Shown here piece after piece: positions 10,741-48,224 of a DNA stretch of 64,000 nucleotides (the stretch's first letter is position 1; each line of letters opens with the position of its first letter). The stretch is from Podarcis melisellensis. Its lineage: Eukaryota. The notes under the pieces are model-generated. The model did not search any database and had not been told where the DNA came from. It saw nothing but the letters and a program-made list of their open reading frames with translations. The DNA lies in assembly GCA_964234715.1 (NCBI GenBank), contig OZ174277.1. One strand, written 5' to 3'. A program made the position numbers and the translations under genes.

Positions 10741-11998
10741 AGACCAAGATTCTCGGGGAAAACCAAAGCTTAGAAGCTGGGAACTCCAAGGCCATAAACT
10801 AGAACAAGTCTCAAACTATAAGTATTTAGGAATGGTGGTCCAGGCCTCAGGATCCAACAAACTACACATAAATTCCATCGGGAGCTCTGGGGGAAAAACA
10901 GCAAATTGTATCCTCAAATTTTTTAGAACCCAAGGGGGCTTTTTCATCCCCGCGGTCCTAAAATTATACAAGGCCAAAACATTGGCGCAGCTCCTTTATG
11001 GATCCCTTCCAGGGCTGCCACCCTCTGCTTTCTCCCCACTCGAGAGAGTTCAATCCAAACTCCTTAGAGCCCTCATACAAGTCCCCAGATGCATATCAAA
11101 CGCATGGGTCAGACTAGAAACGGGGATGATGAGAGTGGAGGCTCATATCAGCCTAACATCAGTCTATAAATGGCTGGCACTGAAACTGCTCCCCCATGGT
11201 ATAGCCCCACTGATCCTTTGCGACCAGTTCCAGTCAGGCTGGAAGACAGCAGTTCTGAACACTCTTCAGAAACTGGGTTTTGCCCCTCAAGCTCTTCTAA
11301 GTCTGGGCTTGGGCCAAGCAAAAGCTATGGTTAGGGCAAAGAATTATAGACACTGAGAGACAAGAGGACTGCTTAAGGTGCCCCGACTACAAAACTGTAG
11401 AAATCGAGAGGGAGATAGCTGCACTGGGAGCATATCTCTTTTTTCTCGTATCCAAAAATGCAAGAAGGGCTTTTACACTTGCCAGAAGCTCGGCTCTGCC
11501 CTCGCCAGTCATGGAAGGATCCTTTTAAAAAGTCCCATACGCCCAGAGACTTTGCACCTGCCCATTGGGGGATATAGGAAGCGCCGAACACATATTTTTT
11601 AGATGTCCCTTTTACGATGAGGCATGTAGAGATACCATTGACCCCCTGCTGGTGAGGCTTGCTGACCTCCCAGAAAAGCAAAACTTCGATCTTCTCCTGT
11701 TAGGCAAAGGTCACAAAACAACCTGGACAGTCACCAGATTCTGCACACAGATCTGTAGGCACAGACCATCCCTCGATTCAAACTTGTTTGTTAAGAAAAT
11801 TCCCAAACTCGGATCCACGGGTGACTCTGAGTCATTTCTCTATGGTAGTTTATCTTAAAGTTTTTATGGGTTTATACACCTATTGCATTTTTAAACTTTA
11901 AATCCATTGGTGTATATTGTTTTAAATGTTGGTGTTGGTTTTGCTTTTGGGATAGTAGTCCCACTTGTGTTTCACAAGCTGGTCTCCGACTGTAATAA

Positions 11999-14580: not shown

Positions 14581-15551
14581 TAGGGCTGGGTGATATCAGC
14601 TTTTCAACATCGCGGTGTATCGCCAGCCAAACATCACAGTTTGGCAATGCCCCTTCCGACCTTCAGGAGGAGGGGGGGTTGTGGGATCACGACCCCGCCC
14701 ACACTCGCTCTCGCGAGGCTGGCGTCAGCCTCGCGGGAGACAGGGATTCCCTCAATTAGCATACCCTGTGGCGCCAGCCAATCGGCTGGCGGCAGGGGCG
14801 GGGCTTCGTAGGGCCACTTAAGGTCAGGGCAGCCCCTGGCTCGCCCCCTTTCTTCCCTGGAGACGACGCGGTTTCCCACCCACCCGCCCTTTAGGTTTTG
14901 CCACTGACCTTGCTATGGGCTTCGGCTGGTCGCCGCAAGGGGCCTGGTAGGAGTTTTTCCATTTGGCTAATTGGCTGGTTTGGTGAGCCACTTGGTTTTT
15001 TCGCCTACCTCGTAGCAAATCGTCACAACTCCCTCGGTTTTGGCGGTAGGCATTGGCCGGGGTATTATCATGCAGATGAGGTTGGGGGGGAGGAACGCCA
15101 TCACCTCCCCCAATGCTTGAAGGGTAGTTCGTTAAAGGACTCCGAGGGGCGACGCCTCGTCCGAAACCTACGGAGGCTAGGGCCTAAAGCGCGCCCCCGA
15201 GCAGTAACCCCTCGGGGAGCGCCTAGGGATATGCATCTCGGGTGGCTCCCCCTGTTGGTGTTTAACCCTTCCCGGTCAGACCGGATAGTCGGTTAGGGCC
15301 AATGCCTAAAGCCAATACCCTTCTTTCCTGTAATCAATAAAGTTGTGGCCATTTTCGCCCATTAACCTAAAAACTCTGTGTCCGTTGTCTTCATTTATTC
15401 CACCTGTGGGGGGGAGGGAATAGCCACACAATATACCACCACTCAGGCGTGGTGGTGGTTTCACCAGCGATATACTGCTGAGTTAAACCAACATAGCAGT
15501 CTGCTCCTCATACTGGTCCTGGGCGATATATTGATATATTGCCCAGGCCTA
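14581..15551. mobile_element. hAT-type MITE interrupted by an Ngaro-like solo unit
   Basis: TIRs tagggctgggtgatat / atattgcccaggccta, with a perfect 8-bp TSD gtgaatag at 14573-14580 and 15552-15559. Confidence 0.85.
14639..15430 (+). mobile_element. Solo A-spacer-B terminal unit of an Ngaro-like retrotransposon (second family)
   Basis: About 792 bp against 799 bp for A2-spacer-B2 of the full element. Shares TAGCAAATCGTCACAACT, TGGCGGTAGGCATTGG, GGGT-N4-CGTTAAAGG, CCAATGCCTAA and AATAAAGTTGTGGCC. 'caca' occurs at both junctions; CCAAT and GC boxes lie in the A part. Confidence 0.85.
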
Positions 15552-16812: not shown

Positions 16813-18940
16813 TAAGGATGCTCTTGGTGACTTTAATATGCTAAACATCAACATTCAGAATCTGACCTTGGCAAATTATTTCTGCCCATTAAAAGAGATG
16901 GTCAGAAAAATCATCACCCTTCTTTCTTACTAATATATGTGGGTACTACTTTTTGTGCATTTTAACTAGGCATATTTAGGAAACGTAACTGACAAAGAAA
17001 ATGGAAAGTAGTAGTGTTGTGATGGACATTGCATATGGCAATCCAATGAATCACTTAGAAGTGTCTACACAGCTGGTATTGGCTGCAGTTTAACAGAGAT
17101 GGCAAAACATTTATGATTTTCTTTTCTTTTTTTAGTCACATAGGGCTTTTCCACATCTAGGCAGCCAAGAACTCCACATTGCTAAGAAATTAGTAGAGCA
17201 TCACAGATAACAGCCAATTTCAAAATAAGGCCCATTTCCAGTTTTCCCAAAATCTATTCCAGGCCCACCTCAATTCAGTCATCCCCGTATAAAATAGCTA
17301 AACAAGAAAGGGACATTGGAATGCCTCAAAAAAGCTGATAATGTGTCTCCCAATCTGTGACCTCAGAACACTTTTTCAGGTCCAGAACTTGGAAACCAGA
17401 TGTGTCCAGCGCTGATGTGGAACACCCAATGACTGCAGCAAAGAGGGTACCACCCTTCGCAGCTGCGATGTCCAAGAACAGTACATTTGGCAGAGCCCTT
17501 AATGAGCCTGCTGAATTGAAGACAAGGGATAGAAATGATTTTCCACTTAAGTGGCACTTACCTCCCCAAATATTTAACAGTTTGTATTAACAAGGCAGAT
17601 TGATTCAACAGAAACGGTATGTGAAAAGAAGCTGCAAAGATCCAGTGAGCCACTTCCCCTGCTTTCGTGTCTTCCTCTTTTCTACATTATACAATGGAAG
17701 AAGCTAAAGCTGTCTCCTAAAGACTGTCTACAACCACCACTGCAAAGCAAATTCTGCTCCGATCCAGACCAGAGGAAGACTATTATGGGTCTTTTTAGAG
17801 GAGTCGAATGACAGATTAAACACACACTTTCCACTTCCATGTTGTTCTGGTTTAATAACCAAGTTAAAATAGCAGAGCTTAACTTGAACTAGGGCTTTGG
17901 AGGGTTCAGCCCTAGAAGATATTTTCAGTGCCGGTACTTTTCCCCCTGGAACAGAAGACCAATCAAAATAATGCATTTGATCCAAGCATTTGCAAGATGC
18001 TTCCCCCCCCCCCCTCACCACTGAGTAGCTACTGTCTGTTCAAAAGTAATTTGGGGAATTCAAGGCAGAGCATTCCAGTCTGTGCAGAGCATTTAAATAT
18101 ATATTCACTGTACAATATTGGTGTCTGATGTCGTACTCAGAGCCTTTCCACTGTACTCATAACCAGGCTGGTAGCCGAGTGTTCATTAGATCACAATGGT
18201 TCTGAGCAGGACTTCCTATATTCCGCTTCAGAGATATTCTGACACCTGTGTAGCAGGCTCTGTCGCCAGCCCTCTTTAAGCCTAACATCTCGTGTCTCAC
18301 CAACAGTACAAATGTTCAGAATTCCTAACTATTTCCTGTGTTTCAAAATTAGCATCCCAAAGATGTCCTGTTTATATTTTGGAGGTATGGTGGAAATAAA
18401 CACTATGAAGTCAGGATATTCCATCAGCAGGACTAAAATACTGAACAAACTCTTATTTATTTTTTTGCCTTCCTACTCTCCTCTGCTTTACATTTTCACT
18501 TCTACAACCCCTTTAATAGAGTTTGATCAATAACCCTGTGCTTAAACTCTGCGTGAAGAAAATGGTTAATGTTCCTGTTTTGTTGTCCCAGTTCCAAGTG
18601 TGAAAAAAAAACCCTTGGCTGTGCACAATCACCCTTTCCCCTCGCAATGAGTTGAATTCTTTGCTTTGGGGTTTGCAATTTTACCGATTTCTGCCTTTCG
18701 GGATCAGCCGTATCTATGAAAACCTAGAGGATACTTTGTAATGGAAAAATAAATAGGCTAGTCTGTATGTCAGAATTTCCGTGCAGCAACATAATTAAAA
18801 CTGTTCCAAGTGGTAGGTTTTATCACAAGGTATGCCACACACATGTAGTTTACTGCGCGGTAGAGATTATTTTCTCCATATCGCCATAAACGTTTTCATG
18901 TTTCTGCACTGGAACAGAAGGAATCACCCAATTTAAAATA

Positions 18941-19165
18941 CAGTGGTAACTCGGGTTACAGGCGCTTCAGGTTACAGACTCCTCTAACCCACAAATAGTA
19001 CCTCAGGTTAAGAACTTTGCTTCAGGATGAGAACAGAAATCGTGTGGCAGCGGCACAACGGCAGCAGGAGACCCCTTTAGCTAAAGTGGTACCTCAGGTA
19101 AGAACAGTTTCAGGTTAAGGATGGAGCTCCAGAACAAATTAAGTTCTTAACCCGAGGTACCACTG
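18941..19165. mobile_element. Tc1/mariner MITE (cagtggtacctc family), copy 1
   Basis: TIR cagtggtaactcgggtta / taacccgaggtaccactg with TA TSD. Confidence 0.9.
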
Positions 19166-20175
19166 TAGCATATAAGTGTGTGTGTGTAACACAAAGGTGA
19201 TGAGTAGACTAAATTTTTAAGACTAAATAGCCATTGGATGCTAACAGTTACCCTATTCAGCTATGTTTAATGGGGCTACTATAATCAACATTGTTGGGGG
19301 GAGGGTAGGATCACAAACCCCCAACCCTCCATAGACTGATCATTCCTTTGTGCATACGGTTTCTCTCTCTGTGTGTACACCAGGTGTACATCAGGTGTAC
19401 ACAAGCTTTGCATATGCCAAGTGGTATTCTATATTTTGCATGGAGAGCACCTAAGAGCACATAATTTGCACGGACTGGCTCTGTGCATAAATAAACCATC
19501 AAAGTAAGGAATTCAGAAACAGAGCCTTCCGATTCTTCTCTCCTTCCATGCATCACCTGCAACACCCACAAATTAAGAATATTTGACAAAGGGCTAGTGA
19601 TGTTTAATTTTTGAAAGCAGCAAGTTTAACTGGTTTAATCAACCCAAGCTATGTGCCAGTAAATTCACTCGTACTGAGGGCCAGTTGTGAAGCTTCTGGC
19701 CCTTACTATATCAATCACTTCTCCCTGGTCAACCCAGAGATACCCACAGCACTCTCCTATTCACTTAAGTAAGTCCCACTGTGTTCAATGGAACTTACTC
19801 CCTAGTAAATATGTTCAGGGGATAGCAACCCAAATCTGTTTTCATTATACTTTCTCCAGTTGAACCCGAAAAAGTCAGGCTTTCCTCAATATTGCCCTCA
19901 ATCCATATGTAAAATGTGGAGGGAGTTTGTAGAAAAGCACGGCCTAGAGTACTTTCATTCCTCGCGCTGCATCCCTGCCAGCATCATGTCACCAGGATCC
20001 ATTTTGGCAAAACTGCAAAGCTTTTTGCTCTCTTAGTGTACTGTACTACTAGGATTTGGGGGGATGTCATACTAGCAAGAAAAGCAAGAAATGGAAACAT
20101 GTAGGAGGAGACACAATTTCAGAAAATCTCATTGTTCTTATGATGAAACTGGAGATATAGAGCTAACTAAATGTG

Positions 20176-24998: not shown

Positions 24999-25240
24999 CA
25001 GTGGTACCTTGGGTTACATATGCTTCGGATTACATACACTTCAGGTTACAGACTCCACTAACCCAGAAATAGTGCTTCAGGTTAAGAACTTTGCTTCAGG
25101 ATGAGAACAGAAATCGTGCTCTGGCGGCGCAGCAGCAGCAGCAGGCCCCATTAGCTAAAATGGTGCTTCAGGTTAAGAACAGTTTCAGATTAAGAACGGA
25201 CCTGTGGAATGAATTAAGTACTTAACCTGAGGTACCACTG
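24999..25240. mobile_element. Tc1/mariner MITE, copy 2
   Basis: Same TIRs and body as 18941-19165, with TA TSD. Confidence 0.9.
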
Positions 25241-27009
25241 TATATCTGAAAGGTTGGGGAGTTACAGGGCATGTGGGCTAGACCTGCCCACCATGCTCCT
25301 CCAAATACCTGCTGGGCACTCATTAGAAAGAAATATCTGCACACACAAGGAAGGCCGCTGATTGGCCAGGCATGTGTCAGGAGACCACGACAGCAATGAA
25401 TAACAACAGCAGTAGGCAGAGCATCCCATGCAGCCCCCTCCACACATTTTTTCAAGACATGGAAGGGTTTGTGTGCACGCGTGCACTCACACGCACACAC
25501 CACACAATTAGCAACATTTTGAACTATTTACTCTAATCCAAAGTATTTTTGCCTTGAGTCACTGCTACATATCAAATCCTCCCTAACAAACAGAGAGATA
25601 GATTTTTAAGCAACAAAACATCAACACTAAACCATGAGCCTCATCATTGCAAAGCACAGTGACACATTGCCACGGCTGAAGCCATTCTCATCTCTGCATG
25701 CCATACCATGGGCAGTTGCACATTCCAGTTTGATGCTATTCGTGCTTCGTTTGAGTTTGGCTTCTGCAGCTTACAGGAATGCCTAATAGCTGGGGACAGA
25801 GCTGGGAGTTGTCCATATGTGGAAAAGTCTGCCTGTGGGCTAGCCATTGGTCACCCCATTGAACATGCTTGTCAAAGGTTTGCCCGGCAGCAGGAACTGG
25901 ATTGTCCTTTGTATCCCAATAATCACCCTACTAGTCAGAGCCTGATAACCAACAATAAAAGTGCCTCTGCACAACCACATTCTTCTCTTACTGAGAAACG
26001 AAGCTCGGACAGCATATCAGATGTACATTGACCCTAAATATACTCTCTTGTACTCTCTCTGTGGGGCTCAGTTACAGCAGTTGCTTGGCTCTGAAGGATT
26101 AATTTGCCTTTGAACCCAACCTCGCCCATTGTGATCACATTACCATAGCAACACTTTTCTGCAACACCCCAAACATGACCCACCCAAGGTGATGCCATAT
26201 TCCACTTGTTCCAGACACACACACACACACACAGGCAAGCAAATCCATGTTGGCTAGGAGCAGATTAGTAGCCAAAAAAGTTCACAACCACTATGGTGGT
26301 ATGTTGCAATATTAGCATTAAAAATAACATGGTCACAACTCACACCAAATGAAACCCTCATCTCCAGGAATCTGGCTCTGAAACACAAGGAGTGGAAGGC
26401 ATCCAGCTTCAGGAAAATGTGGTATATCTATTTACCGCTGAAACTAGTTCCTAAAAGACAAGAGTGTGTGCTCTTGTGAGCCACTTCCCTTCTCCTAAGA
26501 ACTGGGTATTTGCATTAGAACAGTTAAGAAAGAAAAATGAAGACTTCCTATTTATGCATTATTTAACAACAAGGTTCCCACAAGGAAATTTTTAAGGAGG
26601 ATTTCCTCACAATGCTAATTTTTAAATCAGCTCTGTGCTGCAATCACATGAACTATTCTCAAAGGTGAACCCTGTATGTCACACAGTGTCCATTTCCACA
26701 TTGATGCAGTTTAGTTCGGAAGCTACGCTCACTGCTTCCCATGTCAGCTTCTGCAGTCTTGATGACTGAATGTCTTGCCCTTTTCTTTGGCCTAGGAAAC
26801 TGGGAAATCATTAGGGCTGCTTAAAGTGATTGAAGCTTCCCGCGATGACTATATGAAACAAAGCCACAGAGAAGCTTCTGTGCTTTCAGGTTGCCTCAGT
26901 AACACATGAACTACTAGCTCAAGGCTGCAGCATCAGCAAGCCAGAAGAAGAAGTTGACTTATTGAAGGAACTCCCCAATAATAGAAGGAGGTGGATGCAA
27001 AGCCCAGTA

Positions 27010-35601: not shown

Positions 35602-35814
35602 AAAGCGTGTTCTCCCTAAAAGAGAGCACGTGTTGCGGATGGGGCCAGGCAAAACCCAGGTTGCCAAGCATGATTAGATAGGAGGGGCTTGGAGCAGTTT
35701 GGATATTGGTGTTGCTGAGGATAAATTGATGTTGCCAATTTAGGGGTGGGATTAGTGGCTATTTAAGTAAGGTTCACAGCTTTCTCTTTCTCTTTTGCTG
35801 TGAACATCGGATCT
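35602..35814 (+). repeat. Split direct repeat A1 (213 bp)
   Basis: Identical by eye to 42141-42353. Confidence 0.95.
35705..35766 (+). promoter_or_regulatory. Putative Pol II promoter in repeat A
   Basis: ATTGG at 35705, GCCAAT at 35734, GGGGTGGG at 35743 and TATTTAA at 35760-35766, followed about 25 nt later by a pyrimidine-rich initiator-like tract. Confidence 0.6.
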
Positions 35815-36742
35815 TCAACACCGGAGTGGATCGGCAAAAGAGTTGGTTGTATAAACCCTTGTTCCTTTTCTTCCTCTTCCTTCGTTTCTATCTATTTCTT
35901 ATTTACTTATCCTCCCTGCTAATTCACCCTTCTATTTAATTCACCTCCTCTTATTTTCTAATTGTTGATTTGGGACTCTCATTGGGGGGGGGAGCCTCAC
36001 GGTCCCGGGGGGGGCTTACGGCCCGGTTCTCGGCCGAGCCACTAGACCCTGGACGGGAGTTTGGCCCCTTGCAGGCTGTTGTTTCATATTTTAACCTCCC
36101 CACCCCCCCCAACCTGCATCCGCAGCTGCGTGCGCTGGAGCCTGACGCGGCTGGCTTCGGCCCGGTCGGGCCTCCTCCGTTGCGGCTGCCCAGGCTTCTC
36201 CGCGGCTCACTCGGCCCGGCTGGGCCCGCGCCGCTTCCTCCCACCCCACCCCCTTCCCGCGACTGGGGCCTGTGAGCGCCAGGGGCCTCCTCGGGCCTAC
36301 TCGGCCCTGTCGGGCCTGCGTTGGCCCGGGGACCGGCAGCGGCCTGTGCGGCCCGGCCCCGCCCACCTCCGCTAGGCGCCGGGTGCTGGGATCGGTTGGC
36401 GCGGCCTAGCGGGGCCTGCCCTGCCGGGCCTTCCTTCCACGGCCGCCCCCCCCGTTTAGGAGCGGGCTCCAGGCGGGAGCCGCTGGGGCAGGTAACGACT
36501 TGCCTGGCGTCGGTGTTGGCGGCGCGCTCCTTCCGCGATCGCGGGCCGGGGTTTCGTGCGCTTGAGCCCTGCAGGCCTTTAGGCGATCTGGGGGCTCCCG
36601 GCCGCTCTTGAGCCCCTTCCTCCCCCTTCCCACCATCTCCGCCCCTGTGGTTTTGGGGGGGCGCCGGGTTGGGGACTGGTGGTGATCCTCCATTTTTCAG
36701 GTAATTTGGCGGGAGCGCCATTTTGTTGTGTTCAGGCCTGCA

Positions 36743-36841
36743 GCGCCATCTAGTGGGCCAGCTCCGTAACTGCAGCCGGCTGAGAGCTAGTGCTGGCCCA
36801 ACCTGAGTGGAGCCCTCTAGTGGCTACCTCTTGCATTGCAG
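36743..36841 (-). promoter_or_regulatory. Two tandem CTCF-like sites with upstream motif in the element leader
   Basis: The minus strand reads CTGCAGTT-acggagctggc-CCACTAGATGGCGC and CTGCAATG-caagaggtag-CCACTAGAGGGCTC. Confidence 0.65.
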
Positions 36842-37059
36842 TGTAATTTGTTACTACCCTTGCTATCTGTGGATTTGCTTTTCAGCTGATTAAGCTGCTT
36901 ACATTTTGAGGTCAAAGCCTTGGTCTAAATTGGGTCGTTACTTACCTACTGGTCAATTAATTGCTGAATATTAATTTTATTTGTATTGATTTGCTTAGTT
37001 CAATTTTATTGTTTCTTTGAATAATTTTAATTTTGTTTTATTTTACGCCAGTAGTAGGA

Positions 37060-38586
37060 ATGGCTCCAAAAAAGGCTACAAAGAAGTCTGGTCCGCCCCT
37101 CTCTGCGAAACGGCCCATAAGGGGCCCGTCTCAAGCTCTTCGCTCTCCTGCGCCTGGTCAGTCGTTGCAGCGCATTCAAACCATGGTCTCCAGTTTGGCC
37201 GGCGACCCAGTGGCATTGGCAAGGGTGGAGGCCGAGATGGATGGCCTGCTACACCGCGCCTCCACCCCTTCGACTTCATCAGCAAGGCTGGTTCCTCCTG
37301 CGGGTACCGCGTCCCCAGTGTTGTCATCCAGTGAAGACGAGAGAGAGGCATCATTTGCCGGGGGTGTTCTTCCAAATACGCAGTTGGCTCGGTCGCTGGT
37401 TTTACCTGCCCCGCAGGTCTCTGTGGCTAGGGGTCGTGGCCGGTCCAGGGCCGGGACCAGGAGAAGGGAATCAACCCGGGGACGTGCGGCGCGGGTTTCC
37501 CCCGCGCAGCCTCCAGTAGCAAGTAGGGCAGTGCCGGGGCATTCACAAGTTGTCTCTTTCCAGTCATCTCCAGGCGCTGGGCAGCAGGGCGATGTGTCTG
37601 AGTCTTCAGTAGAGGACAGCCTCCCCCCACCTCCAAAGACCTCTTCTGGAGGGCATCGCCGCCGCAAGAAGAGGTCCAAGAAGCGTGCCAAGCGGAGACG
37701 AAGGGACACCTCGTCGTCTTCTTCAGGTACATCTTCTCAGACTTCTAGTAGCGATGAGGAGGCGTCCTTGAAACTTTATTGGGGTTTTGGAGAGGCCTCG
37801 GGGCTCCCAAAGTGGGTTTGGGAGAGGAGGGCGAACTCCCACAGGGCCAGGTACGGGGCAGTACAAGAGTGTTTGGATGGAGTGTTGGTACCTGAGGTAA
37901 GGGTATCCACCAATTCAGCCAGGGATCTTATCCCAGGGTCACATCTGTCCGCCACATTACGGTCCAGGATCTTGAATGGGCGTTATGTGGATATTTTTAG
38001 CTTGGCCCCCCCTCTCGAGGGCCAGGAGCCCCTGGATAAGGGCTTGCCTCCAGCTAATAAACGTTCGATCTTAGCAAAAGCGGACAGGAATTTTGAGCGT
38101 TGGTTGGATAGTTTCCAGGTTTTTGCTGGAGTGGTTTCCGCGGCTTATCCCAGGAGGTCTTTGCACTTGTGGGTTTATCAGTCCATAGTCCGCTCGGCCT
38201 TTACTATGGCCGGGGAAGCTGCCGCTCTGTCCTACGATCAGAATTTTAGACGTAGAGCGGCCAAGATCCCTACTGCCCGCTGGGATCGAAAAGACTTGGA
38301 TGTCTGGACCACTTATGTGGCCCCTAGAATTGATAAGAAAGCCCCTGATACACAGAAGTTTAAGTCGGCCCCAGCGAGACCTGGCCGTAAGCTGGTCTGT
38401 TGGGACTTCAATAAAGGTACTTGTCCGCGGCAATCCTGCAAATATTTGCATGTGTGTGACAAGTGCTCAGGTAACCACGCAGCCTCCACATGTGCCGGCA
38501 GCCGGCGGCCATTTCGGAAAGGGGGAGGCTCACAGCAGCCTCCTAAAGCAGCTTCCCAAGCTCCTGCCACTGGAACAGGGAAGTAG
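37060..38586 (+). CDS. gag: Ngaro ORF1, Gag-like protein with a basic NLS-like tract and a C-terminal Cys/His zinc finger
   Basis: ATG at 37060 (MAPKKATKK), RRRKKRSKKRAKRRRR, YDQNFRRRAA, and CWDFNKGTCPRQSCKYLHVCDKCSGNHAASTC. Confidence 0.9.
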   Translation: MAPKKATKKSGPPLSAKRPIRGPSQALRSPAPGQSLQRIQTMVSSLAGDPVALARVEAEMDGLLHRASTPSTSSARLVPPAGTASPVLSSSEDEREASFAGGVLPNTQLARSLVLPAPQVSVARGRGRSRAGTRRRESTRGRAARVSPAQPPVASRAVPGHSQVVSFQSSPGAGQQGDVSESSVEDSLPPPPKTSSGGHRRRKKRSKKRAKRRRRDTSSSSSGTSSQTSSSDEEASLKLYWGFGEASGLPKWVWERRANSHRARYGAVQECLDGVLVPEVRVSTNSARDLIPGSHLSATLRSRILNGRYVDIFSLAPPLEGQEPLDKGLPPANKRSILAKADRNFERWLDSFQVFAGVVSAAYPRRSLHLWVYQSIVRSAFTMAGEAAALSYDQNFRRRAAKIPTARWDRKDLDVWTTYVAPRIDKKAPDTQKFKSAPARPGRKLVCWDFNKGTCPRQSCKYLHVCDKCSGNHAASTCAGSRRPFRKGGGSQQPPKAASQAPATGTGK

Positions 38587-40192
38587 TACCCTGTTCTCCT
38601 TGGCACATACCCCTGTGCGGTTACAGCCATTGCTATCATTGTTAGCTCTATACCCTGACAGTGCATCGGCATCTTATTTGCGTGATGGTTTTTCTTTTGG
38701 TTTCAGGATCCCAGTCGCCTCCACCCCTGTAGCTGGGAACCCTGTTAATCAAAAATCGGTTAAGGATATGCCAGAGGTGGCACGCAAGAAAATCGGGAAA
38801 GAATTGGCGTTGCAGCGTATGGCTGGGCCTTTTGCCACCCCCCCTTTTCCTAACTTGCATATTTCACCCTTGGGCATCGTTCCCAAAAAGGCTCCGGGGG
38901 AATTCCGCCTAATCCACAATTTATCTAGTCCTAGAGGCACGTCAGTAAATGACGTAATTCCCCCGGAGCTTTGTTCGGTGAAGTATGCGTCTCTTGATCA
39001 CGCGATCAAGATCATCAGGAAGTTCGGGCGGGGTGCCCTGCTAGCCAAATGCGACATTGAGTCGGCGTTTCGGCTGCTTCCTATTCATCCCGATGACTTT
39101 TGGCTGCTAGGTTTCCAATTTGAAGGGGGTTATTATTTTGACAAAGCTATGCCCATGGGCTGCTCGGTGGCCTGTGCGGCCTTTGAGTGTTTTAGTTCAT
39201 TTTTGGAATGGGCTTTGCGTGAAAAAACCGGTTTGGGCGGGGTTACGCATTACCTGGATGATTTTTTGATGACTTCGGCAAAAAATACGGGTAATTGTGA
39301 GGTGCTTTTGCGTGCCTTTGCCTCCCTGGCGGAGTACCTGGGCGTTCCGTTGGCGGCGGAGAAGACCGAGGGCCCTTCTACGCAGCTGACTTATTTAGGT
39401 ATCTTGCTGGATACGGTGGCCCAAACTTCCAGTTTGCCGCCTGAGAAGATTACCACTTTAAAGAGGGTCATCAGTGAACTCCTTCCCTTAAAGAAGGTGA
39501 CGTTGCGGCAACTCCAGTCGCTGCTGGGTCACTTGAATTTCGCTTGCAGGGTGGTCGCTCCGGGGAGGCCATTCTGCTCACGTTTGGCCAGACTGACATC
39601 GGGGCTGCGGGCCCCGCAGCACAGAGTGCGCCTTCCTCAACAAGTGAGGGCTGACCTTAACATGTGGTTGGAATTCCTAGAGGAATTCAATGGTGTTTCC
39701 TTGTGGCAGGACATTTTGAACCTCCATAATGATTTTCAGGTGCACTCTGATGCGGCGGGGTCATTGGGGTTTGGTCTCTACTGGGATGGTAGGTGGTGCG
39801 CGGAACACTGGCCTCCGGATTGGCGTGGAGAAGCAATAACTCGAGATTTAACGTTCCTTGAGTTCTTCCCCATTGTGGTGGCCGTGCACTTGTGGGTGGA
39901 GCATTTCAGAGACCACCGGGTTTGCTTTTGGTCTGATAACCAGGCGGTGGTGAAGGTACTGGCTAAGCAGTCTTCACGATCTCCGCGAGTATCAGCTTTG
40001 CTGCGGGCGTTTGTATTACACTGTTTACGCTTTAACATAGTGTTTTCTGCCCGCTTTATTCCGGGCATATCTAATGAGATTGCTGATGCTCTGTCCCGTT
40101 TTCAGATGGAGCGGTTCAGGTCCCTGGCGCCACTGGCTCGAGACCGTCCGGAAATTTTCCCGGATCATCTCTGGAACCTTGGCAGCACTTAG
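38300..40192 (+). CDS. pol: Ngaro reverse transcriptase / RNase H
   Basis: 630-aa ORF overlapping gag. RT motifs FRLIHNLS, KCDIESAFRLLP, MPMG, YLDDF, YLGILLD. RNase H motifs HSDAAG, LEFFP, WSDNQ, NEIADALSR. Confidence 0.95.
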   Translation: MSGPLMWPLELIRKPLIHRSLSRPQRDLAVSWSVGTSIKVLVRGNPANICMCVTSAQVTTQPPHVPAAGGHFGKGEAHSSLLKQLPKLLPLEQGSSTLFSLAHTPVRLQPLLSLLALYPDSASASYLRDGFSFGFRIPVASTPVAGNPVNQKSVKDMPEVARKKIGKELALQRMAGPFATPPFPNLHISPLGIVPKKAPGEFRLIHNLSSPRGTSVNDVIPPELCSVKYASLDHAIKIIRKFGRGALLAKCDIESAFRLLPIHPDDFWLLGFQFEGGYYFDKAMPMGCSVACAAFECFSSFLEWALREKTGLGGVTHYLDDFLMTSAKNTGNCEVLLRAFASLAEYLGVPLAAEKTEGPSTQLTYLGILLDTVAQTSSLPPEKITTLKRVISELLPLKKVTLRQLQSLLGHLNFACRVVAPGRPFCSRLARLTSGLRAPQHRVRLPQQVRADLNMWLEFLEEFNGVSLWQDILNLHNDFQVHSDAAGSLGFGLYWDGRWCAEHWPPDWRGEAITRDLTFLEFFPIVVAVHLWVEHFRDHRVCFWSDNQAVVKVLAKQSSRSPRVSALLRAFVLHCLRFNIVFSARFIPGISNEIADALSRFQMERFRSLAPLARDRPEIFPDHLWNLGST

Positions 40193-41079
40193 TTTTTCAG
40201 GGAGTAGCTGCTTCTGTCGCCCCCTCTACTTTGAGGTCCTATGAGAAAGCATGGGCCGATTTTTTGCTATTTAATGGACAGTCAGTAGCTGGGGAGGTTC
40301 TTGCCCCCCATTCTACATCCCAGGTGCTCAGGTATTTAGCACATTTATTCCAGAAGCGCAGGGCAGTCAGGACGCTGCGCCTTCACTCAGCAGCGATCTC
40401 CTTTTTTAGTAAGGCATTCTTCAACAAAGACCCGTGTGGGAAGTTTGTGGTGCGCAAGGCTTTGGAAGGATGGGGGCGATTGCTCCCCTCCGGGCTTCCC
40501 CCCCGACGACCCATCACTTTTGAACTTTTGGCAAAAATGCGCTGTAAATTGCGCAGCATCTGTTGGTCGTCTTTTGAGGCGCGGCTATTTTCCGCAGCCT
40601 TTTCATTAGCCTTTTTTGGGGCTCTGAGGGTAGGTGAGGTGGTACTGGAGCCTAAGCGGGATGGTGGTTCCAGGGGATTATTGCTACAGGACGTGAGTTT
40701 GTCTCCGTCTGAGCTTCAGGTTAACGTCAGAAATTCGAAGACAGACCAATTGGGCAGGGGTGCCATTATTCGGCTCCCGGCGTCGGGGGAACGTGGCCCT
40801 TGCCCTGTAAAAGACCTCACAAAATATTTGGCCTTGCGTCCAGCAGGTGAAGGACCCCTGTTTATTCATGAGAACGGGCGCCCTCTGGGGAGGCATCAGT
40901 TCGCCAGAGTGTTGCGTAAAGCTCTTGCAGCTTGCGGCCAGGTGGCATCGGAGTTTGCACCTCATTCCTTTCGGATTGGTGCTGCAACGACGGCTGCCCA
41001 TTGGGGTTTGTCGGTGCATGGGATTAAAGATTTGGGTCGTTGGAAATCGGGGGCATTCAAAGTATATGTGCGCACATGA
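40087..41079 (+). CDS. Tyrosine recombinase (frame open from 40087; first in-frame ATG only at 40537)
   Basis: Full catalytic set: R (ALRVGE), K (SKTDQ), HxxR (HSFR), W (GRWKS), Y (KVYVR). Confidence 0.95.
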   Translation, partial: CSVPFSDGAVQVPGATGSRPSGNFPGSSLEPWQHLVFQGVAASVAPSTLRSYEKAWADFLLFNGQSVAGEVLAPHSTSQVLRYLAHLFQKRRAVRTLRLHSAAISFFSKAFFNKDPCGKFVVRKALEGWGRLLPSGLPPRRPITFELLAKMRCKLRSICWSSFEARLFSAAFSLAFFGALRVGEVVLEPKRDGGSRGLLLQDVSLSPSELQVNVRNSKTDQLGRGAIIRLPASGERGPCPVKDLTKYLALRPAGEGPLFIHENGRPLGRHQFARVLRKALAACGQVASEFAPHSFRIGAATTAAHWGLSVHGIKDLGRWKSGAFKVYVRT

Positions 41080-41692
41080 TATGGATATGTACTTACATTT
41101 TTTGTGTTTAACCCTAGGTTGGGCTCCTATCCGTATTTGGATAGTAGGCCACAGTATTGTACATTGGGCTGCCGTCAGAGCTCGTCAGTCTGGACTGGGC
41201 GAGGGCCTATGCTTCCCACAACACGTTCAGGTTTCCTGGATCTCCAGACGGGGGATGCTGTGGAGTGAATTCTTACCACTCATGCGAAGGCGCGTTTTCC
41301 AGGATGGTCCTCCTTCAGCGATTGTGGTGCAGCTCGGGGAGAACGATATCGTATCTTCTTCCTGCTTTGGGCTGCGTGCTGCCATTTTACAGGACTTGGG
41401 GGAATTGGCGGCCATGGTGCCTTTTACTACACTGATTTGGTCACAGTTGCTTCAACGCCGCACGTGGCGTGGTAGTCCCTGCCCAGCAGCCACTGAACGG
41501 GTTAGGAAGCGGGTTAATTCCGCAGCAAGCAAGTTGGTGGTGGGCCTGGGCGGATTGGTGATACCTCACCCTCTTATTTCATTCAAGGCTGCTGAACTAT
41601 ACAGAGATGACGGGGTTCATCTCTCTTCAGTGGGGAATGATTTGTGGTTGGATTCAGTGGTGTCCAAGTTGAGGGTCTGGTTTGCTTTGTGA
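40847..41692 (+). CDS. SGNH/GDSL-family hydrolase (domain ~41118-41692)
   Basis: Block I IVGHS, block II RRG, block III LGEND and block V DGVH. Hydrolase ORFs are known from some vertebrate Ngaro elements. Confidence 0.9.
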   Translation: MKDPCLFMRTGALWGGISSPECCVKLLQLAARWHRSLHLIPFGLVLQRRLPIGVCRCMGLKIWVVGNRGHSKYMCAHDMDMYLHFLCLTLGWAPIRIWIVGHSIVHWAAVRARQSGLGEGLCFPQHVQVSWISRRGMLWSEFLPLMRRRVFQDGPPSAIVVQLGENDIVSSSCFGLRAAILQDLGELAAMVPFTTLIWSQLLQRRTWRGSPCPAATERVRKRVNSAASKLVVGLGGLVIPHPLISFKAAELYRDDGVHLSSVGNDLWLDSVVSKLRVWFAL

Positions 41693-41720
41693 GTGGTTGG
41701 CGGCGAGCGTAGGGCTCGAG

Positions 41721-42140
41721 TGGCGGTTAGGCATTGGTTAAAATTGCTTGGTGGAGGGGTATGGATAGGCTGGGCCTGCCCCTCCAATGCTGCTGCTGCA
41801 CGGGTATTCCGTTAAAGGAATTCTGAAGCTTACCATCCCCTTCGTCCAAACCCTGACGGCAGGGTGCGGGCCGTGTAAGCTTCAAGGAGCATGCGGGGTG
41901 TAGCTGAGGGTCTGATTCACAGCTCTGGCTGGCCCTGATCTTGTTCCTCCGAACTGGCTAAGGAGTCAGTGCTGTCCCCCAAGGCGGGAGGGGACAGCTA
42001 GTCATAACCAATGCCTAAGCAACCATTCACAATTTGTATGATAATAAAGTTGTGGCCAAAATTATGCCAAAAACCTTAAACAAAAATCACGTGTCATGTG
42101 TGAGTTATTGGGGTAGGGGTTTTGAAGGACCTCGTCACGC
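41721..42140 (+). repeat. Split direct repeat B1 (420 bp), AATAAA at 42043-42048
   Basis: Identical by eye to 42517-42936. Confidence 0.95.
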
Positions 42141-42353
42141 AAAGCGTGTTCTCCCTAAAAGAGAGCACGTGTTGCGGATGGGGCCAGGCAAAACCCAGGT
42201 TGCCAAGCATGATTAGATAGGAGGGGCTTGGAGCAGTTTGGATATTGGTGTTGCTGAGGATAAATTGATGTTGCCAATTTAGGGGTGGGATTAGTGGCTA
42301 TTTAAGTAAGGTTCACAGCTTTCTCTTTCTCTTTTGCTGTGAACATCGGATCT
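42141..42353 (+). repeat. Split direct repeat A2
   Basis: Copy of 35602-35814. Confidence 0.95.
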
Positions 42354-42516
42354 CCCGCCCGCCCTCCCTTGTTGGGCTTGCGCTTGACCTTGCTTTGCCT
42401 GTCATGGGGTCGTCCGCCTTGGTGCGGGGGCCCAGTAGGAATTTACCAATTGGCTGATTAGTGTGTGCCTTTTGGGTTTTGCCTACTGCTTAGCAAATCG
42501 TCACAACTTGTAAGGT

Positions 42517-42936
42517 TGGCGGTTAGGCATTGGTTAAAATTGCTTGGTGGAGGGGTATGGATAGGCTGGGCCTGCCCCTCCAATGCTGCTGCTGCACGGG
42601 TATTCCGTTAAAGGAATTCTGAAGCTTACCATCCCCTTCGTCCAAACCCTGACGGCAGGGTGCGGGCCGTGTAAGCTTCAAGGAGCATGCGGGGTGTAGC
42701 TGAGGGTCTGATTCACAGCTCTGGCTGGCCCTGATCTTGTTCCTCCGAACTGGCTAAGGAGTCAGTGCTGTCCCCCAAGGCGGGAGGGGACAGCTAGTCA
42801 TAACCAATGCCTAAGCAACCATTCACAATTTGTATGATAATAAAGTTGTGGCCAAAATTATGCCAAAAACCTTAAACAAAAATCACGTGTCATGTGTGAG
42901 TTATTGGGGTAGGGGTTTTGAAGGACCTCGTCACGC
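42517..42936 (+). repeat. Split direct repeat B2
   Basis: Copy of 41721-42140. Confidence 0.95.
42839..42844 (+). terminator. Polyadenylation signal of the full-length element transcript
   Basis: AATAAAGTTGTGGCC is conserved in all three Ngaro-like units, with a GT-rich tract downstream. Confidence 0.7.
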
Positions 42937-43298
42937 AAAATAACAGGCTGAAAAACTCTGGGGGTTTATACCACTTTAAAGAGCTGGCCCATGAGAAATT
43001 ATACATAAAACTGGGGGTGGGGGAGGGGGAGATACCAATAATAAATAAGACCCACAGTGATGAACAGGATTCAGCGAGTGGCCAGAGAGCTCCCAAAATA
43101 ACCCTAACTGGACCAGAAAACAAAGGCCACAATATCTGACTGCCAGTGGCACTGATATGAACATCAAGATGCCCAGATGGATGGCAGTTTTCTATGTGGT
43201 TATATCTGCAACAATCTTCACATGTTTTACTTAGAAATGGAGATTAAAGTTTGAAAGCCAAGAGGTTCTATTTGTGTGGGGCAGGGTAGGTCCTTGTC

Positions 43299-44612: not shown

Positions 44613-45164
44613 CATGATTTTACACACTTTGGGAGAGAATAATGGTCTGAATCACAGAATTAACGCAATATAAGAAAGAAAGAAGTGTGTGTTAAACCTC
44701 AGGACGTGGCTAAAAAAGAAGAAAAACCTTGCATCTCTTCCACTGAGATGCAGATCTCACAGTTGGCCATAACTAGGGATTGAGGAAATCTGTTTGGTTC
44801 ACATTTTAATATAAGCCTACCATTCTAACACATTTCCCAGTAACATGTGAACCAAAACAATACTATCCTTCAAAATTCACCCTTCTCCTAATTTTCCAAT
44901 GCAGTTCACCAACCCAGAAATGAATACTAAAATGCACATATTAGGGAAAGTATACATAAAAATGCATGTTATAAAAGGGGAAAATGTTTGCAAATATGCA
45001 TACATTGGGCAAAATTGCACACTAAAATATGCATGTTAGGAGAAATCCTCACTAAAGCAAATGAATTTGAGAACCTTTTTTTTAATGCAAGCTGATGTAG
45101 AAATGTGAAGAACAGAGATTAAGACTGGAAAAATGAGAAACGTGGAGTAACTGAAATTGACATA

Positions 45165-45399
45165 CAGTGGTACCTCGGGTTACGAACTTAATTTGTTCCA
45201 GAGGTCCATTCTTAACCTGAAACCATTCTTAACCTGAGCTGCACTTTTGCTAATGGGGCCTCCTGCTGCCACCACGCCAAGCGATTTCCGTTCTCATCCT
45301 GGGGCAAAGTTCGCAACCCGAGGTACTACTTCTGGGTTAACGGAGTTTGTAACCCGAAGTGTTTGTAACCCGAAGCATTTATAACCCGAGGTACCACTG
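45165..45399. mobile_element. Tc1/mariner MITE, copy 3 (opposite orientation to copies 1-2)
   Basis: TIR cagtggtacctcgggtta / taacccgaggtaccactg with TA TSD. Confidence 0.9.
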
Positions 45400-46156
45400 T
45401 ATTTGTCCATGACTATGTTCACATCATAAGAACATACCTAGCTGGTAGCTGCTCTGAAGGGCAAAATAAATTTGTATTTGATGCAAGATGTCACTGCCAT
45501 TCCTTCAACATGTTTTCAGATTTTGGAGCATGTTTGCAAACTCTGGGCTCTAGAGCTGAGCTAACCCCTGCTTGATTCAGTGTGAGACTTGCTGAGCTTC
45601 ATCCAAATTCACTGAGAAACAGAACTTCCTCCTACAAGCTTTTGTTGTATGCTGTATTACCCAATGGGACAGAAATTATGGGGCAAAAGGTTTCCACTTG
45701 CCTGGAATCCTATTAAGACATTTTGTTTTACTTCTGGCAGAGTCAGATCTGAGTGAGCAGATAATTTAATGAAAGGAGGGATCATAACAGGCAAAGTCAG
45801 GCTTAAAGGGTGGAGCGGGGCTGGGGGTGGGAAAAGCTTCACTAAATTTCTTGGCGTTCAAGTTTACCCTACTCCTTAAGTTTCAGAGCATGAAGCACAG
45901 AAAGCCCTGAGCCTTAAGAGGGCAAAAGGCCAAAAGCTACATGGGAATAAAGATATAAATTAAACAGAGGAAGGAGAATGCACAGAAGTTCATCCGCCTC
46001 TGACTAGTTTAACAGGCTATTCCCTTCCTTCTCCTGAATGGTTTGTGTTATCGGAGATTTCTAGTGCATTTGAAAGCTTTGCATGGGATTTACCTGAGGT
46101 AAATTCATCCGCGTACCTGAAATACATTTATTGCCTATTCATCAAGAGGACACACA

Positions 46157-47779: not shown

Positions 47780-47959
47780 CTAGAAAAACATCAAACATAG
47801 ATCTATGAGCCTCCAAAAAGTTTTACATTACCCCCTGAAGAATTATTAGAAGCGCTCGCCTACCAACACACTTCTGGGAATTTTTAAACTATGCAATTCT
47901 GTAAAGGCATTCAGATTAAGAAACGGAATCCAGTTAATTGTGCTGTGGCTTACTGAGTA

Positions 47960-48201
47960 CAGTAGTACCTTGGGTTATGAACTTAATTTGTTCCGGAGGT
48001 CAATTCTTAACCCGAAACCATTCTTAACCCTGAGGCGCACTTTCGCTAATGGGGCCTCCTGCTGCTGCCACGCTGCCAGCGTGCGATTTCCTTTCTCATC
48101 CTGGGGCAAAGTTATCAACCTGAGGAACTACTTCCGAGTTAGCGGAGTTTGTAACCCAAAGTGTTTGTAACCCGAAGCGTTTGTAACCCGAGGTACCATT
48201 T
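47960..48201. mobile_element. Tc1/mariner MITE, copy 4
   Basis: Same body as 45165-45399; right TIR degenerate. Confidence 0.85.
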
Positions 48202-48224
48202 TATCGGCTTATGGCAACACTGAC

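Follow-up and report, generated by a model that had tools for sequence, protein, structure and literature searches.

A covarying hairpin with a U-rich internal loop in the 3′ spacer of a lizard Ngaro retroelement, a possible ENE-type element

The window analysed here is a stretch of 64,000 nt from the lizard Podarcis melisellensis (contig OZ174277.1). It carries an intact Ngaro element on the plus strand (35602-42939), with reverse transcriptase (RT) and tyrosine recombinase ORFs and an A1...B1-A2...B2 arrangement whose internal repeats lie after the recombinase. This organization matches the published definition of Ngaro elements, split direct repeats with internal repeats past the recombinase (PMC4157794). 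Reading along the plus strand, the A1 repeat (35602-35814) is followed by a gag-like ORF (37033-38586), the RT ORF (38300-40192), the tyrosine recombinase ORF (40231-41079), ORF4 (40847-41692), the B1 repeat (41721-42143), the A2 repeat (42141-42353), an A2-B2 spacer of 163 nt (42354-42516) and the B2 repeat (42517-42939). A1 is identical to A2 and B1 to B2 (both 100% identity), B1 and A2 abut through a common AAA, and the spacer occurs only once within the element. Pfam matches in the element ORFs were zf-CCCH, RVT_1 and Phage_integrase, the CCCH finger of the gag-like ORF being ZAP-like; no Pfam match to a methyltransferase domain was found in these ORFs. The recombinase is closest to proteins of lacertid lizards and next to those of geckos and anoles. 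ORF4 itself has no Pfam match. Its homologues in fused Podarcis proteins give weak matches to Lipase_GDSL_2 (PF13472), in agreement with the hydrolase reported in some Ngaros (PMC7192593).

Both A1 and A2 contain a promoter with CCAAT boxes and a TATA-like box (35760-35767 in A1, 42299-42306 in A2), and similar boxes are equally placed in other copies. Judging from this position, transcripts from A2 would begin near 42330, roughly 20 nt upstream of the spacer. The B repeats carry AAUAAA followed by GUUGUGGCC, at 42043 in B1 and at 42839 in B2. This AAUAAA signal is kept in every copy; the stretch formed by it and the bases that follow (42839-42852 in B2) has 5 matches in the window for 0.02 expected. 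In addition to the intact element, the window contains two solo A-spacer-B units, one on the plus strand (~14.7-15.45 kb) and an older one on the minus strand (~2.55-3.3 kb).

Several further features of the locus and its relatives were recorded. A C-rich block, CCCGCCCGCCCUCCC (42354-42372), begins exactly at the A2/spacer boundary and is kept in all copies, those of gecko and anole included; the sequence found after A1 is different. Another subfamily is represented by three Podarcis Ngaro copies that stop after one B and lack A2-spacer-B2 (L001 ~10884-11270, L004 ~11507-11890 and L137 ~17054-17440), which could reflect either B1/B2 recombination or a different integrated form. Finally, a short interspersed repeat beginning TACAGTGGTACCTCGGGTTA is present four times in the window, in both orientations and with 80-92% identity (18951-19167, 25025-25246, 45159-45402 and 47958-48204); it resembles squamate SINEs.

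The spacer of the intact element contains a hairpin at 42433-42488. Its outer stem of 7 bp is formed by CAGUAGG (42433-42439) and CCUACUG (42482-42488). Above it lies an internal loop that is U-rich on both strands, AAUUUA on the 5′ side (42440-42445; U4 to U6 in other copies) and GUUUUG on the 3′ side (42476-42481; 4 to 6 U and then CG, UG or G in other copies). The inner stem and apex (42446-42475) comprise CCAA (42446-42449) paired with UUGG (42472-42475), then GGC/GCC pairs and a CCAAT/ATTGG pentamer. The original prediction had quoted this hairpin together with homologous ones in the two solo units, and all three sequences were confirmed: 42433-42488 (+), 14946-15009 (+) with U tracts of 5 and 6, and 2998-2962 (-), a shortened version with U tracts of 4 and 4 and one A.C mismatch. 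The fold proposed for them is the minimum free energy (MFE) structure of the isolated sequence for the full element and the 14.9-kb copy; for the 2.9-kb copy it is not. The further statement that the hairpin is restricted to the A2-B2 spacer holds; the conserved block adjoining it has three occurrences in the window, one in each spacer.

Folding energies of the three isolated hairpins were no better than those of dinucleotide shuffles (z = -0.69, 0.02 and -0.09), and the spacer, folded as a 201-nt sequence, was also no more stable than its shuffles. Thermodynamics therefore lends the hairpin no support. When the copies were folded in long context, the hairpin was part of the MFE structure in 5 of 8; it lay 1.7-2.0 kcal/mol above the MFE in two others and 3.8 kcal/mol above it in the old solo unit. 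The topology was also searched with a loose descriptor (6 bp or more in the outer stem, 3 U or more on each side, 3 bp or more in the inner stem), giving 17 matches on the two strands of the window; 30 dinucleotide shuffles gave 2-16 matches, 8.2 on average. Such a shape is common by chance and a single instance means nothing; the evidence is therefore to be sought in conservation.

Additional copies were gathered from the loci of recombinase homologues in public lizard genomes, followed by a profile search with the spacer. This yielded nine homologous hairpins from four genomes: the three of the window, two from Lacerta agilis (L002), one from Zootoca vivipara (L003) and three from Podarcis muralis (L133-L135). 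Loci from P0005, P0002 and P0010 added no spacer copy, the spacer being either unreached or absent. The nine copies, some of which are close relatives, form two subfamilies, which are found side by side both in the window and in lacertids, and the hairpin is kept in each of the two. Every copy has an outer stem of seven positions, U tracts on both sides and a CCA/UGG inner stem, usually continued by UGGC/GCCA, and block conservation of the spacer extends across all nine.

Pairing was retained to an extent that slid partners do not reproduce: 95.7% of the cells in the nine-copy alignment pair, compared to 25.7-52.1% after sliding, and the covariation score of the alignment was reached by none of 500 shuffles. 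The predicted covariation across diverged elements is thus borne out in this larger set. Both-side changes affect three of the seven outer-stem pairs, namely pair 1 (C-G/U-A), pair 2 (A-U/G-C, with one G.U) and pair 4 (U-A/A-U), and RNAalifold independently predicts the same hairpin structure from the nine copies. The claim that pairing is kept while stem sequences change accordingly holds for the outer stem; the A.C mismatch of the 2.9-kb copy had gone unmentioned. Compensatory changes separate the two subfamilies and also the near-identical Podarcis copies Pmu135 on one side and Pmu133 and Pmu134 on the other, so that the signal does not stem from one old split alone. The CCA/UGG and GGC/GCC pairs are invariant in the nine copies, and the inner stem is therefore without covariation support, either way. 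The U tracts had been predicted to be conserved, and three U on each loop strand are indeed invariant in all nine copies. Their full lengths (5′/3′) are 3/4 in the intact element, 4/4 in the 2.9-kb copy, 4/4-5 in the Podarcis copies, 5/4 in the Lacerta copies, 5/6 in the 14.9-kb copy and 6/6 in Zootoca, the two strands varying together. The G.U pairs of the outer stem, like the invariant U.G of the neighbouring helix P_pA described below, fit the sense strand only. Altogether, the hairpin is very probably real and under selection as a structure of sense-strand RNA in one squamate Ngaro lineage.

Variation in the source genome was followed with contigs from three runs (X4-X6) of one sample, placed on the element at 85% likeness; these data are genomic and do not report transcription. 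The Ngaro family is very highly repeated in this genome, and the conserved blocks have the greatest summed contig depth. At positions 42433 and 42434 most genomic copies have T and G, as does the 14.9-kb copy. Two variants lengthen the U tracts: T at 42445 on the 5′ strand, in ~39% of the contig depth (run X4), and T at 42476 on the 3′ strand, in 33-55% (runs X4-X6). Among the best-supported variants listed, drawn from thousands of contigs, none changes an invariant loop U. Summed depth reaches about 1.3 million at 42489-42517 and 42837-42865, far exceeding that of the A part, which suggests that this genome may hold a very large number of solo A-spacer-B units.

The hairpin belongs, as one module, to a conserved 3′ RNA domain of larger size. 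Immediately after it lies a block of 19 nt (42491-42509), the most conserved part of the spacer and the one with the highest contig depth of the stretch, with 3 matches in the window for 0.04 expected. A pattern scan of metagenomes for this block returned 120 stretches, none of them homologous by nhmmer bar one weak chance match. The second half of the block, GUCACAACUU (42500-42509), pairs with AAGUUGUGGC (42843-42852), whose first two bases are also the last two of the B2 AAUAAA (42839-42844). In this helix, P_pA, 93.6% of cells pair compared to 30-48% with slid partners, and there is one compensatory change in anole (U-A to C-G). P_pA belongs to the MFE structure in 8 of 10 separately folded elements, including those of gecko (L005) and Anolis sagrei (L006), and is 0.6-1.2 kcal/mol above the MFE in the remaining two. 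Its 5′ strand is present before B2 only and not before B1, so that the helix could affect the choice between B1 and B2 3′ ends.

A second helix, P_B, joins 42523-42536 to 42801-42814 and closes the B domain; its counterpart in B1 joins 41727-41740 to 42005-42018. In this helix 86.6% of cells pair (22-55% when slid), covariation across ten elements is strong, at six pairs or more, and it appears in both the MFE and the centroid fold. The whole 3′ region of 442 nt folds with z = -3.65. An invariant motif, CGUUAAAGG (42606-42614), is found inside the domain closed by P_B. From the sequence, cleavage would be expected at the CA at 42853-42854 or 42864-42865, 10-21 nt past AAUAAA. The hairpin is located 351 nt upstream of AAUAAA in sequence. 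It ends 11 nt from the 5′ strand of P_pA, at the same helix end as the expected start of the tail, and P_pA and P_B together would place the start of poly(A) no more than ~13 nt from P_pA and from the hairpin-bearing junction.

P_pA and P_B are kept in the Ngaros of gecko and anole, whose spacers (72 nt and 124 nt) were searched for the hairpin; it is absent from both, and is therefore not essential to the family. Structure is predicted for the remainder of the spacer as well, and some of its alternative pairings involve bases of the conserved block and so compete for them. In particular, UGACCUUGCU in the 5′ half of the spacer (42394-42404) is complementary to AGCAA...GUCA of the block that follows the hairpin (42491-42503), and the predicted UGAC/GUCA and UUGCU/AGCAA pairings enclose the hairpin. 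The UGACCUUGCU pairing, which shows no covariation, would compete with P_pA for GUCA and may constitute a switch. A helix of 3-4 bp between the GGGCC preceding the hairpin and (G)CCC at the presumed cleavage site was rejected, the G run pairing upstream in longer context.

What could a hairpin of this type do? The original prediction likened its topology to that of ENEs, in agreement with published descriptions (PMC7583470, PMC12501189): an ENE is a stem-loop with a U-rich internal loop adjoining G-C pairs, acting on the poly(A) tail near the 3′ end of the RNA (PMC7583470). The lizard hairpin has several traits in common with the KSHV PAN element and the other single-domain ENEs of viruses and transposable elements: it is a stem-loop in which each strand of the internal loop contains a U tract, the upper stem is closed by a C-G pair adjoining these tracts, the lower stem finishes in G-C pairs, and the structure is located in 3′ untranslated RNA, here with a conserved AAUAAA (PMC7583470). 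PAN, in contrast, forms five triples, whereas each strand of the lizard loop offers 3-6 U, and that of the intact copy 3-4. The lizard hairpin differs also by the AA and (C)G that separate its lower stem from the U tracts, by its position 351 nt before AAUAAA and by its host, a tyrosine-recombinase retrotransposon. The ENE of Evade (Copia93), an Arabidopsis LTR retrotransposon, occupies a comparable place, the spacer that separates the last ORF from the 3′ terminal repeat, and shares U-rich internal loops flanked by G-C pairs; protection from deadenylation has been proposed for it. It is a double-domain element with four U tracts and is experimentally proven (PMC12501189), whereas the lizard hairpin has one predicted domain.

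In MALAT1 and MEN-beta a nearby secondary structure delivers the A strand to the ENE, a part that P_pA would play in Ngaro. These RNAs encode a genomic A-rich tract, whereas no conserved genomic A tract follows P_pA, so that the partner of the Ngaro loop would be the poly(A) tail; unlike theirs, the Ngaro hairpin lacks C+.G-C interruptions and an RNase P processing signal. Retroviral RNAs, too, fold around their poly(A) signals: HIV-1 has a poly(A) hairpin, and the Rex element of HTLV-1 brings AAUAAA to the cleavage site. P_pA is similar in that an upstream block pairs with the end of AAUAAA and with eight further bases, but this likeness concerns the block neighbouring the hairpin and not the hairpin itself.

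A possible mechanism can be drawn from these elements. The block located 11 nt past the hairpin pairs with the bases right after the B2 AAUAAA, P_B closes the ~280 nt of B between the two strands of P_pA, and the start of the poly(A) tail would thereby be brought to ~13 nt from the hairpin-bearing junction. The U-rich loop could then clamp A residues of the tail between its U tracts, in the manner of an ENE, and this clamping would slow down deadenylation of Ngaro RNA containing the spacer. In this scheme the hairpin, its covariation, the conserved U and both helices are demonstrated, whereas we infer where transcripts end, that the loop contacts the tail and that this stabilizes the RNA.

Compared position by position with known ENEs, the nine copies have U tracts on both strands (U3-6 on the 5′ strand, U4-6 on the 3′ strand). 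A stack of about five U.A-U triples, as in PAN, would call for long tracts; those of Zootoca are 6/6 and those of the 14.9-kb copy 5/6, most copies have 4, and the intact element 3/4. On the upper side, the invariant C-G pair of the inner stem directly adjoins both U tracts. On the lower side, two invariant G-C pairs of the outer stem are parted from the tracts by the AA/(C)G mismatch, and only the 14.9-kb copy forms a G-C pair next to them; in the Evade ENE the flanking G-C pairs are essential (PMC12501189). Three points thus weaken the ENE reading: this interposed mismatch, the intact and youngest copy having the shortest U tracts (UUU-A and G-UUUU, with room for 3-4 U.A-U triples), and the gecko and anole Ngaros lacking the hairpin despite a shared 3′ architecture. 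In addition, scans with Rfam 15 gave no relevant match up to E = 10 for 41500-43100 and for the Zootoca hairpin, in a library whose content in ENE models is unconfirmed. The proposal that only read-through RNA carries the motif was also too strong. A2 possesses the same CCAAT boxes and TATA-like promoter as A1, so that the hairpin would also be present in short RNAs initiated in A2 or within solo units.

Taking these observations together, we regard an ENE-type function as the best single explanation of the hairpin, a plausible one held with less than even confidence. The more specific version is doubtful: that the hairpin is a poly(A)-clamping triple helix, the first in a tyrosine-recombinase retroelement and in an amniote transposon, and that together with P_pA and the closed B domain it separates B2-ended genomic RNA from B1-ended messenger RNA. 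As to novelty, among the publications searched none describes an ENE-like element in tyrosine-recombinase retroelements or links these elements with triple helices, in line with the original prediction.

The same conserved features can be read in other ways. The hairpin might, without forming any triple helix, be a recognition site for a protein of the element and so label RNA containing the spacer as template, a possibility we rate nearly as likely as the ENE-type function. Candidate binders are RT, acting as cDNA synthesis begins, and the Gag-like protein with its CCCH finger, acting in packaging. Conserved loop bases on a covarying stem are the pattern expected of a protein-bound internal loop, and the hairpin lies beside a folded 3′ domain (P_pA and P_B) that is kept from lacertids to gecko and anole. 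The Gag-like ORF has a ZAP-like CCCH finger, and the RT primer and start are unknown for this class (PMC7192593). Nothing, however, connects the proteins of the element to the hairpin RNA, related Ngaros with similar proteins do without it, and matched U tracts on both strands are not predicted by protein recognition. The symmetry and matched lengths of these tracts would be explained if the hairpin were a structural strut, an irregular continuous helix with U.U pairs that aids folding of the spacer or the register of its blocks without any ligand; the symmetric U tracts could equally form U.U pairs in such a continuous rod. A spacer predicted to be structured throughout, with competing pairings around the hairpin, also suits a strut, as does the lineage-specific presence expected of a dispensable insert. 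But a strut would tolerate U-to-C or U-to-A changes, and none is seen at the invariant U, either in the nine copies or among the best-supported contig variants listed; we consider this explanation unlikely.

The apex raises the question whether the conserved feature acts in DNA. The sequence AUUGGC, which had been described as kept apically, is a CCAAT box on the other strand. The pentamer is indeed found at the apex of every copy, mostly in a Y-box-like form (GCTGATTGGCTGG), but in Zootoca it has the opposite orientation (TAGCCAATCT; L003 14895-14912); it is shifted in the intact copy of the window (CCAATTGG; 42446-42460). Being flipped in this way, it may be a signal at the level of DNA rather than RNA: a CCAAT/Y-box of NF-Y type flanked by T tracts, serving an internal or antisense promoter, the inverted repeat being incidental. 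The A promoter has CCAAT boxes as well. Yet this explanation leaves the compensatory changes and G.U pairs of the outer stem unaccounted for, CCA/UGG and UGGC/GCCA stems readily yield such pentamers, and no downstream start site is known, so we judge it decidedly improbable. An NFI site at the apex was discarded on spacing, which is 3-4 or 12 nt between half-sites and not the required 5. Slightly less probable still is that the resemblance arose by chance and was carried along by common descent in a functionless hairpin. The frequency of the loose topology (17 in the window, 8.2 in shuffles), the energy z-scores near zero and the small set of nine copies, some closely related, speak for chance; against it stand the compensatory changes between close relatives (Pmu135 versus Pmu133 and Pmu134) and between subfamilies, and the persistence of the hairpin in two old subfamilies and four genomes. 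Self-priming of cDNA, by the RNA 3′ end through P_pA or by the tail on the U tract, was considered and rejected: by inference, progeny would lose the unique 3′ part of the spacer.

ENE-type elements have been described in transposons of plants, fungi, slime mould and one fish (PMC7583470), and evidence for a role in mobility comes from plant Evade only (PMC12501189). In tyrosine-recombinase retroelements the RT primer is still unknown, even for DIRS-1 (PMC7192593). The covarying domain formed by P_pA and P_B, common to the Ngaros of lacertids, gecko and anole, provides a testable RNA structure for this poorly understood class. If the ENE reading of the hairpin is true, the ENE strategy would extend to tyrosine-recombinase retroelements and to amniotes, and the hairpin would give a handle on how these elements discriminate template from messenger RNA and on how their cDNA synthesis starts.
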